A stretch of 64,000 nucleotides of DNA from Podarcis bocagei (taxonomy: Eukaryota). A program made the position numbers and the translations under genes. Of the stretch, positions 12,537 to 51,100 are shown piece after piece. A model generated the notes under the pieces. It had not been told where the DNA came from. It saw only the letters and a list, made by a program, of their open reading frames with translations, and did no database searches. Positions within the stretch are counted from its first letter, which is position 1. Every line of letters starts with the position of its first letter. Where the stretch lies: the NCBI GenBank assembly GCA_964188305.1, contig OZ076888.1; one strand, given 5' to 3'.

Positions 12537-12870
12537 GGCAGGTGGCACTGTGGGTTAAACCACAGAGCCTAGGGCTTGCCGATCAGAAGGTCAGCGGTTT
12601 GAATCCCCGCAATGGAGTGAGCTCCCGTTGCTCGGTCCCTTCTCCTGCCCACCCAGGAGTTCGAAAGCACAACGTGCAAGTAGATGAATAGGTACCGCTC
12701 CGGCGGGAAGGTAAATGGCATTTCCATGCCCTGCTCTGGTTCGCCAGAAGTGGCTTAGTCATGCTAGCCACATGACCCAGAAGCTGTACGCCGGCTCTCT
12801 TGGCCAGTAAAGTGAGATGAGCACCGCAACCCCAGAGTCGTCCACGACTGGACCTAACTCTTTACCTTTA
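12537..12870 (+). mobile_element. Sauria SINE
   Basis: Colinear with 1550-1911; ends ctttaccttta. Confidence 0.9.
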
Positions 12871-18180: not shown

Positions 18181-18531
18181 GGGACGCGGGTGGCGCTGTG
18201 GTCTAAACCACTGAGCCTAGGGCTTGCTGATCAGAAGGTCGTCGGTTCGAATCCCCACGACAGGGTGAGCTCCCGTTGCTCGGTCCCTGCTCCTGCCAAC
18301 CTAGCAGTTCAAAAGCACGGCAAAGTGCAAGTAGATAAATAGGTACCGCTCCGGCGGGAAGGTAAACGGCGTTTCCGTGCATCGCTCTGGTTCACCAGAA
18401 GCAGCTTAGTCATGCTGGCCACATGACCCGGAAGCTGTACGCCGGCTCCCTCGGCCAATAAAGCGAGATGAGCGCTGCAACTCCAGAGTCGTCTGCAACT
18501 GGACCTAACGGTCAGGGGTCCCTTACCTTTA
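18181..18531 (+). mobile_element. Sauria SINE, full length
   Basis: gggacgcgggtggcgctgtgg head, ggttcgaatccc B box, ccttacctttac tail. Confidence 0.92.
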
Positions 18532-18849
18532 CTGGCAATACTGTGCAAAATGGACCAGTGGTCTGACTGAGCATGAGGCTGCTTCCTGTGTTCCCATGCC
18601 TCTGTTGAGAATCACAAGTGGGGAGAGCGCTGTTGCACTCATTTCCCGCTTGCTCATTTCCCATAGGTATCTGGCTGGCACTGTGAGAACAGGATATTGG
18701 AGCACTGGCCTGACACAGCAGGGGTCTCTTTTGTCATGCAGCTGTTAAAGACACAGGAGACCAGCTTTGGGGCAGGGTGGGACACTGGACCCTATTTATT
18801 TTCAAAGTGGGAATTGGGTTATCTACATGCAGACATCAGTGAGCGCCAA

Positions 18850-22200: not shown

Positions 22201-24847
22201 TCCCTGTCCCTGGTGCAGTGCAATGCATTAGTAGCCCTGTCTCTGTGGTTGGGTGCCAATAGGGCACCAGTAAATTTTGAAGAAGTGAACCACGTAGAAC
22301 ATGGAAGTCCACATAATCTGCCCATCTGAGACTGTTATTCAGCAGAATGGACAGCAATATGGGGTGGGAGGCAGCAACCTTGCCAAAAGGAGAGGAATTG
22401 GACCTCATTTCAGCCTTGGAATGACTCCATGCGATCTCAGCAAGTGATAGCCCTGAGCCTGAAGGGGGTTCAAAATACAAACGTCAGCATGCCTCTCAGG
22501 CCCAAGCTCACATTAAACTGAGTGCAGATCTTCCAGTGTTTGAGAATAATTAGACACGTCTCCATTTTGGCCCCAGTATACTCATTTGCTCCTGAATCTG
22601 ACACAAATATTTCATTTCAGTTTTCTCCTGCCTCCCCAATGCATACATTCCAGGAAAGTGAGAGCTCTAGAAGTCAAGCATCTGCTCCAGTGGCAACAAA
22701 AAATGTCTCTCACATATAGTTCTCTACAGCCACAGCAGGCGCTGTAACTCTCCAACAGTTTGACACACACTGCCATTGCCTCCCAAGACAGATGGATGCC
22801 AACCAACATGTGCTAATAACAGAACCTTATCAGTGGGTCCACCTAACCTCTTAATGCCCCAAATACACCTTTGGGTCTGGCTGGCTAACATACCATTTCT
22901 AATAAAATTCTAGCATTTATTAACCCCAAGCCTTTAGCACCCACAGGGCAGGACTGGAACGGATAGGTAGAAATTACAAGGAAGCAGATTTTGCCTAAAT
23001 AGGAGATGAAGTTTCCAAACAGTAAGAACTGTTCAGCAGTACAACAGACTGCCTTGGGAGGTGGTGGGCTCTCCTTCCCTAGAGGTACTATTTGAGCAAA
23101 GGCTGGACAGTCATCTGTCAAGGAAACCCTGCTCACATCCTGTACTACAGATCCTGCACTGCACAGGAAGTCTAGATGGCCTCTGCTGATTCGTGATTCT
23201 TTAGTCACCCCTGCTTTCTTTACTGTCCATGCAGGAGGCAACTGGAAAGACTGTATTTATTTACCGGCTGTGCAGAATGTCTAATGTGCATGACATGGGA
23301 AGCACAGCAAGGGGCTAAAACAATGAGGGACACAAGGTCAAACCACCTCAGTCCACACGTACATAACGAATAGCCAAGTAAGGCGTAAATCCCCCAATTT
23401 CCCTCCACACTCCTTTTGGAGCTTCAAATGCACATTGGTGCTACAAACATACGTGATTCTGAACTGGCCTGCCACATCAACTAACAAAATATTAAACAAG
23501 TCACTGTTGAGTGTGCTTCACCAATAGCAATGCAACCAAAGAAATGGATAGGTAATGGAAATGGTTGCTAATATCAACCAAATATCCTACCAAATATCAA
23601 TGAGGGGTGGAGGGAGTTTGGGTTTCCAGCTGAGAGCTGCTAGAAGCATCTTGGTATGTAGCATTCTCTTAATATTTTCATCAGAACAAGGATTTGGATT
23701 AATGTTTGAATCAACACTGAACATTTCCACAAGGCATGACTCACATCTAACCACGGGGTAGATGCGAGTTAAGCTGGGAAACATTTTGAGGTGAGTCCAA
23801 GATTTTGCACTGTTGCCAGCTTGAGGGGTGGCTGAAATGTATAAAAATAACATGTTGCCTTTAAAAACCAAGCAATTTCAAACATACCGAACCCCTTTTA
23901 ATAAAAAGGTAAGTTACTCCGGGAAGTGCTTCAAGGAAATATTCATGATATCCCACCCTCTTCGACCAGAAATACGAGAAATTGGATTTCTAAGCAGAGG
24001 TTCACATGGCTTATGACAGTCTGAATAAGACCCTCAGGAAATAGCACAACTCTTTCCTAAAGAAACAAAGGCCCAATTCTTATGACCAAGCAGTCACATG
24101 GAGGCCGATCTGTATGGAAAATCATTCATGTGCAGCCACAAACATCTTGTAAATGTGGGTGTGCGGTGGCATAGTGAAAATCGGAGAATCGGCATGATGA
24201 GTGGCTACACATGAATGGCTCACCCTACAAAAAAAAGATAACAAAGAGGCCCTCTATACATTATAGCCGTGGTGGGAGAGAGGCTGCATCCCATGGTGCT
24301 GCTGTCATGCTTAAAGGGCCAACACCATATGGGTGGAGCCAGTCAGACAAGTTCTTCCCATGTAATCATCAACCCAACTGGGACTGGGTGGAAAGCACCC
24401 CTACACCATTGGTTCATTAAATTCCAGGCCTGGCACCAGCACATGGCATACTGGGGGAAATACTGGGTCACTGGCACTGCTCCTAGGCTGTTGCTGCTAC
24501 TGCAGCTGATGTGGCTCATCTGAGTGGTGGCAGGGATTGAGAGGATGGCAGTTGCAGTGTGTATAATCTCACGGGAGACACCATCTCAGATACAGTGGTC
24601 CTGCTCCTGGCCCCACTCCCAACAAGGCTGCAGCAAGGGCTTGAGAGGGAGCACTGAGCAGGGCTTCTGGCCTAATGTGAAGCTGGAGACCTTCCCAGAA
24701 AGCATATGCAATAGCAAGATTATGTTGTATATCACTAGACGATTCTGATTGGCTACATGGGCTCTGCATATTAGAATGCCTAAGCAAACATGAATGGCTT
24801 TCTCATGCAAAGAGAGAGCCACAGTGCCAAATCGGTAATAACTCAGG

Positions 24848-24849
<2 letters not shown>

Positions 24850-24891
<42 letters not shown>
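24850..24891. repeat. (CT)n microsatellite
   Basis: Direct reading. Confidence 0.97.
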
Positions 24892-24894
<3 letters not shown>

Positions 24895-24909
24895 GTGTAA
24901 TTGTGCCCA

Positions 24910-24923
24910 TTTATTTCTTTATT
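24910..24923 (-). promoter_or_regulatory. Two adjacent AATAAA signals, candidate polyadenylation site of the LC3C-like gene
   Basis: tttatt at 24910-24915 and 24918-24923, about 515 nt downstream of the stop codon. Confidence 0.4.
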
Positions 24924-25437
24924 GCAGTCTTGTCAGAAGGCTTTTTAAAAAAAGGGGAAGAAAGAGATGAAGTAACAAAAACAGCTGTGTGGTTAAAATT
25001 TCCACTCGTGGAACCCTCCAGATTCCCATTAGGCCAATCAGCTTCGTTTAAAATAAGAAAGAAAACCAGACAAAAGTTTCCTGTGCAATAGTAGTGATGC
25101 TCTTTTTTATATCTATGTCTATATCCGTCTGAAGAGATAAGGGAACAAAATAGTTTAAAAGAATAAGCTGGCAGTGGGTTAAAGTAATGGCCCTGCAGAG
25201 TTGGTTAAGAAAGTACATGACCCTAAAATACACCCTGTCATCTGGGCATCTTTTCAGGCAGATACAACATAGAAGGTAGTTCAGTTGCTTCAGGGACAAT
25301 GGCAAGAGCCTGCCTGATAGTGAATACTCTTCTCCCATGCCACTCTTCCACAAAAGCAGTTTAAAAATCCATGTTGTGATAACTATGCCTCAGAGAGAAA
25401 GGGAGGAGGGGGAGACTGCAGAGGCCTTGGAATGGGC

Positions 25438-25824
25438 TCAAGGGCCAACATCACCAAACATATCTTGAGATGCGTAGGTAATGTAGAGGAAGCTGTCATC
25501 ATCTTTGTTGGCTGCATGGACCTCTGAAACAGTCAGGCTCAGGCAGGGCAGGCTCTTGTTGTCCACCAGCAGGTAGAAGGCTTGAGTGGCTGTCAGGGAC
25601 AGGCGGGCCCTCAGACTGTAGACAAACTGAGACATAGATAGATCCCCTGAAACCAGGAATTTGACCCAGCTCAACTGAGGGAGTGTCTTCTCCTTCTGGT
25701 AACGCTCAAGCACCACCGGAATCTTGCTTGGATACTTCGTCCTGATATCAGTTGTTTCCTGCATCCGAGAGGCTAAACTTTTCCTCTGCTTGAATGGACG
25801 GTCATCACTCTGGAACCCCAACAT
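25438..25824 (-). CDS. Intronless MAP1LC3C-like (ATG8/LC3 family) ubiquitin-like protein, 128 aa
   Basis: RPFKQRKSLA..R, P.KIPVV.ERY..E..LP.L...KFLV, AFYLLV.NKSL and FLYITYASQDMFG align without gaps to LC3C/LC3B; ATG in good Kozak context (aagATG); scissile Gly124 followed by DVGP. No symbol given because orthology to canonical MAP1LC3C is not established. Confidence 0.88.
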   Translation of the reverse strand: MLGFQSDDRPFKQRKSLASRMQETTDIRTKYPSKIPVVLERYQKEKTLPQLSWVKFLVSGDLSMSQFVYSLRARLSLTATQAFYLLVDNKSLPCLSLTVSEVHAANKDDDSFLYITYASQDMFGDVGP

Positions 25825-26115
25825 CTTTCTTTAAAAACACAAAAGACCCTTTTCTCCCCCTCACCGGCCCTTTCCACTTCCACTCTACAGCACTAACTCC
25901 AGGCATATCTCTCTCTGTGCATGCTTTGCGTGGCACAGAATCTCATACATAAATACAGAACTTCATAGTAAAGTGCTTTTTAAATGTCCTTCAAATTTCT
26001 TGTAAGAAAAGTAAAATACTGAAAATTAAGCGGTTCTTCTGAGATTGCATTTGTTGGTTGGGGAAGAAGCAGATCAAGAGGGAATCCAGAGTTTAGTAGC
26101 GAGATAGCACCATCA

Positions 26116-26121
26116 TTTATA
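26116..26121 (-). promoter_or_regulatory. Candidate TATA box of the LC3C-like gene
   Basis: TATAAA on the minus strand about 290 nt upstream of the ATG; motif match only. Confidence 0.3.
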
Positions 26122-26249
26122 ATACAATCATCACTTTTGAGTTAACCTAGGCCTTTTTCTTTTCAATAGGCAGCCAATCTGCAGAATTTGGAACCCAGAA
26201 TCATGAGATTTTAAGCAGAACCTAAACTATATGACTAAACTATATGACT

Positions 26250-26569
26250 GCAAGAAGATCAAACGCATCCATTCTTAAGGAAATTAGCCCTGAGTGCTCA
26301 CTGGAAGGACAGATCGTGAAGCTGAGGCTCCAATACTTTGGCCACCTCATGAGAAGAGAAGACTCCCTGGAAAAGATGTTGGGAAAGATGGAGGGCACAA
26401 GAAGAAGGGGACGACAGAGGATGAGATGGTTGGACAGTGTTCTCAAAGCTACAAACATGAGTCTGACCAAACTGCGGGAGACAGTGGAAGACAGGAGTGC
26501 CTGGCATGCTCTGGTCCATGGGGTCACGAAGAGTCGGACACGACTAAACGACTAAACAACAACAACAAC
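26250..26569 (+). mobile_element. Bov-B LINE 3' fragment with (CAA)n tail
   Basis: ORF 26244..26555 gives TARRSNASILKEISPECSLEGQIVKLRLQYFGHLMRR...KSRTRLND; (AAC)n tail; TSD ctatatgact(a) on both sides. Confidence 0.93.
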
Positions 26570-34917: not shown

Positions 34918-35104
34918 CTTCCCCCTGAAGGCTTGTCCTCATATTTGAAATGCTGTGAGGGATCAGCCATGATGGTGAGGCAATTGGGAGTCAGAATACA
35001 GTGATGTATGTAGGAAATAGTTAAGCGGATAGTTTAATGTTCATGTGGATAGTTATATGTAGTTTAGAAAGGTGTCTTTTGTGGGATAGTAAATATTTAA
35101 AAGA

Positions 35105-35470
35105 GGGACATGGGTGGCGCTGTGGGTTAAACCACAGAGCCTAGGACTTGCCAATCAGAAGGTCATCGGTTCAAATCCCCGCGACGGGGTGAGCTCCCGT
35201 TGCTCCGTCCCTGCTCCTGCCAACCTAGCAGTTCGAAAGCACGACAAAGTGCAAGTAGATAAATAGGTACCGCTCCGGTGGGAAGGTAAACGGTTTTTCC
35301 GTGCGCTGCTCTGGTTTCGCCAGAAGTGGCTTAGTCAAGCTGGCCACATGACCCAGAAAAACTGTCTGCAGACAAACACCGACACCCTCAGCCTGTAAAG
35401 CAAGATCAGCGCCGTAACCCCAGTGTCATCTGCGACTGGACTTAACGGTCAGGGGGTCCTCCTTACCCTT
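35105..35470 (+). mobile_element. Sauria SINE
   Basis: Colinear with the other copies from gggacatgggtggcgctgtggg to ccttaccc. Confidence 0.9.
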
Positions 35471-37139
35471 TTTAACCAAGTGCTGGGGGCAGGTTCAAAA
35501 TAGAAGTGGCAGTTTAACCCTTAGTGTAACCTATCTCTTTCTTTGCTTAGCTTATTTGGTGGGTTTCTATCTGAAAAAAGAGCATTAATTTGGTATGCAG
35601 AAGACAGCACCACCCCAGGAGGTGACATCATCTTCCCTGCTGTGTAATAATAAGTGCCAGTGCTTTGACCCTGACCCTCCCTGCTTGGCTACGCCACTGG
35701 TTACTGCCCTATTTGGAAGCTATTTTAAAACTTCCTGTTACTTTTGCTTTAATTTTCAGCCTGCAACTACTCTATTAAATTACAAGACCAAAGCAGCCAG
35801 TAAGACTAGCCACAGCAATTATATAATGTCTGTATGCAGGAAACACCCCTTAAGAGCCTAATTTGACTGCTGTTTCAATATATCCTGGCTGGGTCTAATA
35901 TGTAGGTTACTGGATTAGGTTATGTCACAGTTTGAGATGATCTGGTATCATAAATCTGCCACTTAAAACTAATTAAGTAATCATGAGTATTGTTTTCAAA
36001 AGAGGATTGAGCTAGTCATCCTCTGTTCCCATTGATACCAACAAGACTAGTTGCCACTGTAGCTAGTGTCAAAGAAGTGCTCATTTAACATGCCACTATG
36101 CTCAATTCATTTAAAAAAACCAAAACTTTATTCTAAGATTAAAATAACAGTCCAGTAAAAAAGAAAATAAAAACTTTTCTAAAATAACCCAGCTTCAAAG
36201 TACATTATCAAGCAACTCACAATAAGTTAGATGTCACAAAATAATAAATGACCTGATCCAAAGAGAATACAAAACAAATAAATACTAAATAAAGCCATAT
36301 TTCATTGGGACTTGCTATCTCCGTGACAGACTTTTCATATGAATAACAAGCAGCTGCCAAATAGAGGCAAAATCCATAGGTTTAGCTGCACTCTGAGATA
36401 CTGCTAATTTATGAGTCAATTTTTCAGAAATAAGGATAAACATGAAAAATTGATAAAAGACATTATTTGTGGTCTAAAGACACTATTATTTCAGAAATTT
36501 CCTTCACTGTCTCTTCCCAAAATTTGTACACATGTTTACAAGACCACCACATGTGCCAATAGGTTCCATTGCATTGCATTCCATCACCTCCAACACACAA
36601 GAGAACCTACTCTACGTTTATGGGCGAGACAGACTGGAATAAAAAAACAACAACTTGATTCCAGGTTATTTTTAAGAGGTTTCATTTTCCAATGCACCTA
36701 CAGTGCACTCCCAAACAAAGAAAATGAAATGAAAATAAACCCATCAAGATAAAGTCTTTGCTACCCCTTCACAGATATTAAAATTCCGATGCAATGAACC
36801 ATAAAGCTATTGTCCAGATTGCTGCTAGGTGTGGGTCCAAAAATGGAAAGCCTTCCAGGAAAAAGCAGAGGGGTGGAACTAGAAGGAAGAGGAAAGTATT
36901 ACCTGGAGACAAGACATTCCATAAACAAAAGCTCCCAGACATGAATGTTATTCCTTTTTGCCTCCAAATAGGTGTGTCTTTGTTTAGGACCACAAATGAC
37001 ATTTTCCTACACAGAGATAATATCAGAGCCAAACCATGGGAGATTTGTGACTGGCTCCCCTGACCTCAGGGCTTTATGTGAGAATATACCATATCACTCT
37101 CCCAAAAGCTACACCATGTCTTTTCAAGAGAAGTAACTG

Positions 37140-48126: not shown

Positions 48127-51100
48127 TACCTAGAACACTACATACCTGCTCCTTTAGTGGGAATGCAACTTCAACCAGAACATAACAGATATCCTATTCC
48201 TGGACAGAAGAACCTACCACCAAGAGTTTGTCCATCTTGTCAAGATTCAGCTTCAAGTTACTGGCCTTTCATCCAGCCCCTTGCTGCTTCCATGCACCAG
48301 TTCAAGATGCAAACACAGCTACATGTGGTCCAGATGGAATGGAGATATAGAGCTGTGAGCTGTTTGCATACTGATAACACCAAGCCCAAACTCCCTGCAC
48401 CTCGAGGCTTCAAACAGATATTCAATAGCTTTGCCAAGGAGTGGGATGAGGAAAGGAACACTGTCAGGCCACGTAGCACAATTGCCCTGGAGCTGATAGC
48501 TCTGAAATGAATGAATTAAATAAAACAGTTACCCCCACAGCAAGCAGATAACTATTGCAGAATAATTAACCAAAATGAAAACACTTGGCAGTTGCTCAAC
48601 CCCCACCCCGCACCCTGAAATGTCTTCTTTTGATTTCACTCTTTAACAATTCTAAAACCTTTGAGACTAATCATGAGAAGATGGTGCTTCTGTTGGAGTC
48701 ACTGGAAGGAGCAAAGCTGGGAAGAAGGGAAGACAAGATGAAGACAAGATTAATCTATATGAAAGAAGCAGCTCAAAGGTAAAGTTTCCTGTTGACCACA
48801 GGAAAATCCGATCAAGCTGTTTCCTTCCTCTGTGCCTTTGATGTAGAGTGGCAAATATTTGAAGCATCTGTTTGTTCCCCTGGCAGCTTGGAGTATCCCT
48901 GAGCCAAGTAGGTAAACACACTGCAGAGAGCTTCCTCCTACACCTCTGATGTCACCCAGATTATACTGAGCACCTAAGACCATCACGTGTGCTTCTGACT
49001 AAGCCCTGTTTGCTTACTGTAACATTTTGCGGAGGGTGGCGGGGGGGGGGGGCAAGAAGCAAATCCCGGCAAAGCAAACAGCCTGGCAAGCCAAGCTGGT
49101 TCAAAGAAGGTTACATCCAGAGTCTTGCCATCTCAACAGTGGGGAATGAAATAAAAAGAACTGTGCTATGGCAGCATACAACATATGTGCGCTTGTGGAA
49201 CAGATAAACCCTGCATGCTCTGCTCACACGCAAGGTGTTCCAGCGACTTCGGGATAACCAACTTGAGGATTAAAGAAAGCACACTTTGATCCCCTTCTGT
49301 CATCTATGACATTTGCCCAAGGAAAGCGATTGGGATGGAGCAACCTTGCCAGTGCTTTTTTAAACAATTAAAAAGAAAAAAAAAATCCCGTTGTGCTTCT
49401 TTTGCTGTTCTACTTGGCAAGCTAGACTAAGAAAAGCTTCACCTAGTTCACATAGCTGCAACATGCAGATTTGAGGTTCAAGATACCGAAATAGAATCCC
49501 AGACTCTTGTTTCAACAAGGGAAATAGAGTTTCCCAGCTTAGTTGCCATGGCTGCGATTCTCACCTCTTCCCTAGATTTGAACCTCAGACAGCTTGAAAC
49601 AAAATATAATGTTCTGAGCCTACTAGCACGTACATAAAAATTTGCAAAAGACAAGTAGCTGGTGACAATAAATTCTGGGGATGGAGGATGTGTGGGGATC
49701 TGGCACCCCTATTATCCTCCTTGGTGCCCTAGAGCTGCCTGACAAGGTGTGAATGCATGCCTGTGTGATATTATTATTATTAGATAACTTTTATATTAAA
49801 ACCATAATCCTAGGCTTTGCACACCTGTGGTAGCTGGATGAATATTCAGCCTCTAAATCCAACGAGCGGTTCCGGCAGACAAATAAGCTAATTTAAATTG
49901 CAAAAGTGAAAAGATGCTTAGCCCACTCAGGTGAGGCACAGGTCCCAGGGTCAGTACTGCAGACGACAAACGAAAAATTGCTGGACTTAATTTTTTTGTT
50001 AATGAATAAATGTTACACTTCCTCAGTATTAACTAAGCTTTAACACTTTCTCTATTAATTGCTTGCTTTCTGATTTGTCTGACTTGCAAGGGGGCAAACC
50101 TGTACTATTAAAAGCAGGCCAGACTGCTGCTGAAGTTAAATCGAGTTAGAAATATGCTGTAGTGTGGGTGATGCATGCTAGCACAGGTGGGAAGGAGCAA
50201 AGGGGAACGCTAGATTTCATTTATGGTGCTTTGTCAGTGCCTGTGCAGCCCCTTAGGCAGCTGCAAGAGGCCTTAACACCTGGGTCTGGGAGCTGCCTGC
50301 TGTTTTAATTGCTCACAGTACCCCTGAGCAATGCTCACAGGTCATGGTGCAGATTGCAATTCTGCTGCTGCTTCCAGCACGTATGCGCATCAGAAAAGCC
50401 GGAGCAACCCACCACAGGGCACTTCCTCAGCAGTGGGAGGGAGCTGCCCCTGTGCTTCATATTGTTGCACAGTTATTAAAAACTACAGAAGAAGCACCAT
50501 CTCCATCTGGAAAATAGCATCCTGCTAATATCAGCATGGTTTTTAAAGCCCATGTGTGCTGAATTTGCTTCATTCTGCCCCCCCTCCCAGACCACAGCTA
50601 CACATGTGCAAGCTTCCTTAACACATGAACGCCACCAAAGGGCAGACGTACCCATAGCCACACACATTTCCCCAAAGTTTCCCCTCCACAAATGTATAGC
50701 TTCTCCTATATTTCCAGCTTAAAATAGGAATTGTATCTAGCGGTGGTTGTCAACAGGTGAGAGAGAAGTCTTGATCTGAACTCTTCAGTGTTTAAGGGAC
50801 TGAGGAATTCCCCCACTGGTGCCAATAGCAAACAGCAGTTTCAGAGGAGCAATAATCATTCGGACCACAGCAGGGAAAGAAAGGGTTATACTCTCCCCAC
50901 CTGCTGCACAGCAGCTGCTACTGTATTTAAATGCAAACATGCAAAGATCAGTTTAGTTTTTTGCCCAAATACAGAATTGTCTTCCTTGTATGTCACACTG
51001 CCCTGACACAGAAGCATTTCATTTTTTTTTTTATAAAATTTTTATTGGTTTTACGAAATTTTTAAAGAACAAACAAACACTTAAGAAAACAAACATACAC

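Follow-up and report, generated by a model that had tools for sequence, protein, structure and literature searches.

The window analyzed here, a stretch of 64,000 nucleotides from the wall lizard Podarcis bocagei (assembly GCA_964188305.1, contig OZ076888.1), holds at positions 25438–25824 an open reading frame (ORF) of 128 uninterrupted codons whose product is an LC3C-like member of the ATG8 family. A first-pass annotation, made from the sequence alone, had described this frame as an intronless gene and a possible extra autophagy modifier, either an old retrogene or a separate ancient paralog. The frame is present as described, but on the minus strand, running from 25824 to 25438 (ATG 25824–25822, TGA 25440–25438); a plus-strand reading of the interval was ruled out by stops throughout. 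It is embedded in a full-length processed retrocopy of a spliced MAP1LC3C-like mRNA, and the parts of the insert are as follows, all on the minus strand.

24845..24858, candidate 3' target-site duplication (TSD) AGAGAGAGATTCCT, at the end of the tail; also in the P. raffonei ortholog
24850..24893, (GA)21 microsatellite where the poly(A) tail would lie (Tandem Repeats Finder: 24850–24892, period 2, 21.5 copies)
24894..25900, full-length processed retrocopy (5' untranslated region (UTR), coding sequence (CDS), and 3'UTR, no introns), sharing its ends with other copies
24894..25437, 3'UTR-derived segment, reaching to the parent poly(A) site; the parent last exon is collinear at 94.7–95.1% identity
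24923–24918 and 24915–24910, pair of AATAAA motifs, ~515 nt downstream of the ORF
25438..25824, LC3C-like ORF with an ATG8 fold; former exon junctions at 25773/25772, 25717/25716, and 25610/25609
25805..25906, upstream ORF of 33 codons with its ATG (25906–25904) in the flank, overlapping the main ATG out of frame
25825..25900, segment from the 5'UTR; its first base, 25900, is an added G that the parent genomic sequence lacks
25901..25916, candidate 5' TSD AGAGAGAGATATGCCT, abutting the first copied base and conserved in the P. raffonei ortholog

Membership of the locus in the ATG8 family is clear from sequence. The ORF product matches the Pfam ATG8 profile (PF02991) with an E-value of 7e-31 and a score of 106.9 bits (cut-off 27), and the alignment, which pairs residues 20–124 with profile positions 2–104 of 104, spans the whole domain, in agreement with the full fold recognized earlier from the translation. 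The nearest solved structure is human LC3C (E = 3e-38), above LC3A and LC3B. At the C terminus, Phe123-Gly124 is followed by the four-residue tail DVGP, as had also been reported; this is a putative Phe-Gly of the kind that ATG4 would expose for conjugation to phosphatidylethanolamine. The invariant residues of the fold and of the surface that docks LC3-interacting region (LIR) motifs are not all kept in the P. bocagei copy, which carries Y103H, G111S, and R53W. The good Kozak context noted earlier (A at position −3 of the ATG) and the paired AATAAA motifs are both real, the latter on the minus strand, but both were inherited from the parent mRNA. The TATA-like motif reported upstream lies in unrelated flank outside the copied mRNA, and nothing supports a promoter role for it.

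Anatomy of the retrocopy

The ORF runs unbroken across all three parent exon junctions, and all parent introns are precisely absent, such that collinearity with the parent genomic loci of Lacerta and Podarcis is confined to exon 4 and the 3'UTR (25611–24894, ~95% identity). Three independent retrocopies, including this one, share the 5' end GGAGTTAGTG, where the parent genomes read T-GAGTTAGTG; an extra untemplated 5' G typically marks reverse transcription that ran into the cap. The 3' end, ...AATAAAGAAATAAATGGGCACAATTACACT, is common to all copies and parents, and the parent genome diverges directly after ACACT. The shared start at the transcription start site (TSS), the absence of introns, and the end at the poly(A) site identify the insert as a processed retrocopy of a spliced LC3C-like mRNA.

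Past position 24894, the P. bocagei locus continues as A + (GA)21 (24893–24850), and the orthologous P. raffonei locus has at the tail position the A-rich run AAAAGAAAAAGAAAAAGAAAAAGAAAGAGAG..., that is, A4G(A5G)3A3G(AG)n. This A-rich run is a decaying poly(A), and the (GA)21 in P. bocagei is a decayed or converted tail. The two copies of the candidate TSD are rich in GA and match imperfectly, agreeing at 14 positions when two 1-bp gaps are allowed; we take this direct repeat to be the TSD, and it probably seeded the (GA)n microsatellite. The tail, visible as such in the ortholog, and the imperfect flanking repeat had both escaped the first-pass annotation, which saw neither a poly(A) nor a TSD adjacent to the frame.

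The ortholog lies on P. raffonei CM049754.1, in a locus (L003) collinear with the P. bocagei sequence over 20 kb at 95–97% identity. Because the same insert stands there between the same flanks, the insertion is shared by both species. The chromosome that carries it in P. raffonei differs from that of the parent gene (CM049751.1). A ~380-bp short interspersed element (SINE) is present inside the 3'UTR of the P. raffonei ortholog (L003 10680–11057).

Two other retrocopies begin and end at the same points, matching the P. bocagei sequence over 25900/25901–24890/24892. The first, on P. raffonei CM049757.1 (L007:9925–10960), lies antisense in an intron of a PAD gene, still encodes the parent protein unchanged, and retains an A9 tail and the TSD TGACTTTGTAC; it is 96% identical to the P. 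bocagei insert over 1022 bp. The second, on Zootoca OY735907.1 (L008:9924–10960), lies antisense in an intron of a G-alpha gene, has an A-rich tail and the TSD GAAGAAAACTT, and is 93.5% identical. Neither can be the ortholog of the P. bocagei locus, since the flanks share only dispersed repeats. In lacertids the LC3C-like mRNA has given rise to no fewer than three independent retrocopies, which, for one small gene, implies germ-line or early-embryonic expression of the parent.

The insert has the attributes of L1-type processed pseudogenes: a full-length intronless copy running from the TSS, where it bears an extra G, to the poly(A) site, an A-rich tail (in the ortholog), direct repeats, a chromosome other than the parent's, no parental promoter, and neutral drift. 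It differs from them in its open frame, its (GA)n tail, and its imperfect TSD. Within the ATG8 family, the intronless human MAP1LC3B2 and the LC3 pseudogenes are known examples of retrocopies.

The source gene and the sauropsid LC3C-like clade

Relatives of the ORF product were gathered with a word-based protein search, and no identical protein was among the results. The Podarcis parent (P0121) is 94% identical at the protein level, with 8 amino-acid differences, and its mRNA is ~95.6% identical to the retrocopy. Identity to MAP1LC3C-like proteins is 92% for Lacerta agilis, 88% for Zootoca, 76% for Rhineura, 66–72% for other lizards, snakes, and geckos, and 60–72% for turtles, birds, and the gharial. 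Canonical MAP1LC3C proteins of the same groups, including P0063 of Podarcis muralis, are 55–60% identical to the ORF product (~58% for the canonical Podarcis protein). The first-pass annotation had argued from the divergence of the frame; that argument falls away once the copy is set against its true parent rather than against canonical LC3C.

In a maximum-likelihood (ML) tree of 70 proteins, 36 rows of sauropsid LC3C-like proteins, drawn from squamates, turtles, birds, and one crocodilian (gharial), form a clade that has a long stem and is supported at 100/99. Amniote canonical LC3C constitutes a separate clade (98/90), and the ORF product is placed in a lacertid subclade (100/100). The order of the sauropsid LC3C-like clade relative to amphibian and fish LC3C is left unsettled by this tree. 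Branches within the LC3C-like clade are much longer than those of canonical LC3C, and the lacertid and bird stems are especially long; its rate of evolution is far above that of canonical LC3C.

The clade also has its own sequence signatures: LDRTKFLVS in place of the canonical LDKTKFLVP, SMSQF in place of TMTQF, TLRxRLSL (TLR/SLRxRLSL), and LPC. In the docking strand, LC3C-like proteins have R at the position of LC3B K49 and S at that of LC3B P55. Parent and copy share the lacertid signatures S52, V54, G60, DNK, DDDG, QDTFG, and the four-residue tail. Within LSWVKFLVS of the copy, S52, V54, and S59 were inherited from the lacertid parent, and only R53W is specific to the copy.

Exons were reconstructed from genomic loci under the requirement that they reproduce the annotated proteins. 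The parent has four coding exons of 52+56+107+172 nt in Lacerta, P. muralis, P. raffonei, P. lilfordi, and Zootoca, and the corresponding exons are 52+56+107+184 nt in Rhineura, 58+56+107+196 nt in turtle, and 52+56+107+220 nt in goose. The LC3C-like gene is thus multi-exon throughout the sampled lineages. Canonical Podarcis LC3C has coding exons of 58+56+107+211 nt, and because its intron positions are those of the LC3C-like gene (the internal exons being 56 and 107 nt in both), the LC3C-like gene arose by DNA duplication. In P. raffonei the parent is located on CM049751.1 and canonical LC3C on CM049752.1; the parent protein is identical in three Podarcis species. No neighbor genes were called within ±10 kb of the parent in lizard loci, and the goose locus, with an olfactomedin-type gene, is the only one showing a neighbor.

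These comparisons set the source gene apart from both its copy and its canonical relative. The sauropsid MAP1LC3C-like gene, with which the P. bocagei copy shares its clade and lacertid signatures, is constrained and has four coding exons, whereas the copy is intronless, lies elsewhere, and is unconstrained. Canonical MAP1LC3C (human 2NCN/3VVW, the best PDB match; P. muralis P0063) has the same ATG8 fold but is 55–58% identical, belongs to a separate clade, reads LDKTKFLVP, ends in a long C-terminal peptide, and resides on a different chromosome. The first-pass annotation was therefore right that the locus is not canonical MAP1LC3C, and the locus is not the only MAP1LC3C of the species either, as the canonical gene is present elsewhere in Podarcis. 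Its proposal of a separate ancient LC3C-like paralog was right in part: such a paralog exists across sauropsids, but the P. bocagei locus is a retrocopy of its mRNA. Zebrafish map1lc3cl shares the LC3C-like name, and the rows used include no sequence identified as teleost LC3C-like.

LC3C-like proteins are already in public annotation (XP_032998409.1 of Lacerta agilis; XP_028576821.1 of P. muralis), and a protein cluster look-up returned several annotated in Podarcis and in Zootoca. P. muralis has further annotated LC3C-like proteins, P0124/P0126 and P0125. A full-text literature search, judged by titles, found none that deals with these retrocopies or with the LC3C-like clade of sauropsids.

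Age, divergence, and read data

An ML tree of mRNA-derived sequences, with the copies and lacertid parents, joins the P. bocagei copy and its P. raffonei ortholog with 97% support and places the pair as sister to the three Podarcis parents (78%), inside Lacerta and Zootoca. This position would date the insertion to the Podarcis stem, later than the divergence from Lacerta and Zootoca and earlier than that of P. raffonei. Residue states agree: in S100 and V126 the copy keeps states shared with both Lacerta and Zootoca, and in A104 one shared with Zootoca, where the Podarcis parent and the younger copy L007 have A100, E104, and I126.

The P. raffonei ortholog carries a 16-bp frameshifting deletion directly after ATGTT, removing codons 3–7. 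NCBI annotates this locus (L003:10001–10453) as a protein of 150 amino acids, XP_053243403.1 (P0123), whose first 29 residues are flank and 5'UTR read in another frame and joined to the LC3 frame by the deletion. The annotated ORF depends on an ATG in the flank, the equivalent of 25906–25904 in P. bocagei. XP_053243403.1 is probably a mis-annotated pseudogene.

Between the P. bocagei copy and the P. raffonei ortholog we counted 16 substitutions in 371 aligned CDS sites (4.3%). The flanks of the two species differ by 3.2% in a scripted subset (352/10,991 sites) and by ~2.7% when all listed flank alignments are summed by hand. The parent CDS differs at 0–1 of 387 sites (≤0.26%) among three Podarcis species, with parent-locus flanks at 1.6–2.1%. 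Parent-like constraint on the copy is rejected (P ~6e-13, in a run with 17 substitutions; the conclusion is the same with 16).

On the P. bocagei branch, five of nine substitutions are non-synonymous (R3G, R53W, Y103H, G111S, T122M), as are four of seven on the P. raffonei branch (R20W, S52R, V58D, A104T), which also bears the 16-bp deletion. When invariance was scored over 26 non-lacertid LC3C and LC3C-like proteins, Y103H and G111S in P. bocagei and R20W and V58D in P. raffonei fell at positions that are 100% invariant; R53W replaces a residue that is always basic in these relatives and that corresponds, in our numbering, to LC3B K49. In a Fisher test, hits at invariant sites did not differ significantly between retrocopy and parents (P = 0.18). 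CpG transitions make up 9 of the 16 changes between orthologs, and the CpG count, 13–15 in lacertid parents, has dropped to 7 in the P. bocagei copy and 6 in the P. raffonei ortholog, a loss that is the pattern of unselected, methylated DNA.

Non-synonymous to synonymous changes number 9:7 on the retrocopy branches, to which the stem adds 0–1:2, for totals of 9:7 to 10:9 (the neutral expectation of N/(N+S) being 0.70). The resulting omega is ~0.43–0.55 (P = 0.06–0.18 against 1), from only 16–19 substitutions. The lacertid parent is itself fast-evolving with a similar N:S, and its replacements are mostly conservative. No disabling stop or frameshift is present in the P. bocagei copy, but the chance that a frame escapes start and stop hits after 10–13 substitutions is 0.56–0.72, so an open frame is not evidence of selection. 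The earlier reading of the open frame as a trace of purifying selection is thus not supported, as the frame may be open by chance (~0.6–0.7) and its CDS diverges at least as much as the flanks.

Among runs on record as RNA, no retrocopy-specific words were found, no P. bocagei RNA run having been identified. Three RNA-like contig sets from other organisms match 24950–25772 with 31 other letters and 24 gap letters. At 25668, 25518, 25494, and 25460 they show the parent state, and at 25424, where the copy has a 4-bp deletion, they carry a CCTT insertion; this table of diagnostic sites omits 17 further differences, with 25516 among the sites not covered. The contigs extend as far as the exon 1/2 junction (25772) and break off exactly there. 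We rejected them as retrocopy transcripts on account of the parent-type letters and this stop; they are parent transcripts of other lacertids. In one RNA-like set from another lacertid (X3, 78 M letters), contig word depths over 24906–25718 reach ~16,000–70,000, implying that the LC3C-like parent can be extremely highly expressed in some tissue.

The data set X11, probably DNA, bridges the insert into the flank (25870–26275) with 0 differences. It shares W53, H103, and S111 with the P. bocagei copy, and the radical replacements are therefore real and shared within the lineage. X11 has the parent state at 25460, 25804, and 25818; R3G and T122M are recent or polymorphic.

Origin and standing of the P. 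bocagei copy

In our judgment, the P. bocagei locus is most probably no extra autophagy modifier but a processed pseudogene, with a retrocopy free of constraint as the best case. In the proposed course of events, an mRNA of the four-exon MAP1LC3C-like gene of lacertids, already spliced, capped, and polyadenylated, was reverse-transcribed and would have been inserted as cDNA by L1-type target-primed reverse transcription (TPRT), carried out by a long interspersed element (LINE), in the ancestor of wall lizards (Podarcis) before the split from P. raffonei. From what is established for LINE-1, full-length copies that bear a poly(A) tail, TSDs, and a cap-derived G result when L1-type TPRT acts on a cellular mRNA. 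The insert carries the mRNA from TSS to poly(A) and none of the parent promoter. Freed of parental constraint, it has since drifted at the neutral rate, losing CpGs and taking on radical replacements at invariant ATG8 positions, with the frame disrupted behind the start codon in P. raffonei and left open by chance in P. bocagei. The absence of function that this course predicts runs counter to the first-pass annotation, which had set aside a fresh processed pseudogene; the copy is only ~5% from its parent, its CDS diverges at the neutral rate, and its ortholog is frameshifted.

In keeping with such machinery, the window contains one element that may be a recently active L1-type LINE. It is apparently intact and poly(A)-tailed and has the following structure.

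56075–51020, minus strand, LINE; AATAAA then an A11 tail near 51030–51020
56075–55026, ORF1, 349 amino acids
55021–51290, ORF2, 1243 amino acids, with APE endonuclease and reverse transcriptase domains

Other repeats are also present. A dispersed repeat at 26244–26565 (plus strand) and 336–623, whose ORF, ...RRGRQRMRWLDSV...SRTRLND, resembles the 3' end of BovB/RTE-type LINEs, has enormous depth in all read sets compared. A SINE-like family of ~350 bp has copies at 1534–1916, 12538–12858, 18181–18532, and 35104–35480.

Several observations weigh against the copy being a plain pseudogene. The P. bocagei frame is intact, with start, stop, and Gly124 kept; NCBI annotates the P. raffonei ortholog as protein-coding; and the TSD of the P. 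bocagei insert is imperfect and of low complexity. The high N:S of the parent itself and the small number of substitutions leave dN/dS with little power here, and a period of weak purifying selection on the copy is possible. The negative RNA result has low weight, as it draws on contigs only and on no RNA of the same species. A rival reading is a young functional retrogene, one that had acquired a promoter from its new surroundings and encoded a divergent ATG8 modifier with an altered LIR-docking surface (Trp at the LC3B K49 position). Such a retrogene would suit the open frame with Phe-Gly124 and a short cleavable tail, an omega of ~0.45–0.55 that is nominally below 1, the coding annotation in P. 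raffonei, and the several LC3C-like loci kept in lacertids, and the presence of W53, H103, and S111 in X11 means that the altered surface is no product of assembly errors. We nevertheless regard it as unlikely, given a CDS divergence at or above the flank rate, radical changes at invariant fold and docking residues that are different in each species, a frameshifting deletion in the ortholog, and CpG decay that accounts for more than half of the changes. No promoter was copied, an out-of-frame upstream ORF overlaps the ATG, and no copy-specific RNA was found among the RNA runs. The checks proposed with the first-pass annotation lean the same way, with the frame of the ortholog broken, a dN/dS of ~0.5 that is not distinguishable from 1, and transcription specific to the retrocopy not found among the runs, in which P. 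bocagei RNA was not identified.

The remaining readings concern what the locus is rather than whether it functions. Placement of the protein in the sauropsid LC3C-like clade would suit a genuine ancient LC3C-like paralog, or the only MAP1LC3C of the species, after intron loss. However, a spliced LC3C-like gene is found in three Podarcis species, Lacerta, Zootoca, Rhineura, turtle, and goose, canonical MAP1LC3C is also present in Podarcis, and the copy is nested in lacertids as sister to the Podarcis parents and bears the signatures of mRNA ends. The spliced parent and the tree position refute this reading of the locus, to which we attach scarcely any probability. An assembly artifact or cDNA contamination is practically inconceivable: the same insert and flanks occur in the independent P. 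raffonei assembly, an orthologous locus that refutes the artifact, and X11 contigs cross from the insert into the flank without a difference.

There remains a small chance, no more than slight, that the copy is translated, or was until recently, as a retrogene in a retrocopy-driven expansion of the LC3C-like paralog, which evolves fast and is very highly expressed in at least one library. If this were true, wall lizards would have gained an extra ATG8 with Trp at the LIR gate-keeper position, and vertebrates would have an additional, overlooked ATG8 subfamily in the sauropsid LC3C-like clade, marked by a docking-site signature of its own. On the pseudogene reading that we favor, the open frame in the P. 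bocagei retrocopy is not to be counted as an additional autophagy gene, and the 150-amino-acid LC3C-like protein of P. raffonei, which owes its flank-derived N terminus to a frameshifting deletion, calls for caution in annotation. The source gene family is a more interesting lead than the P. bocagei copy itself.

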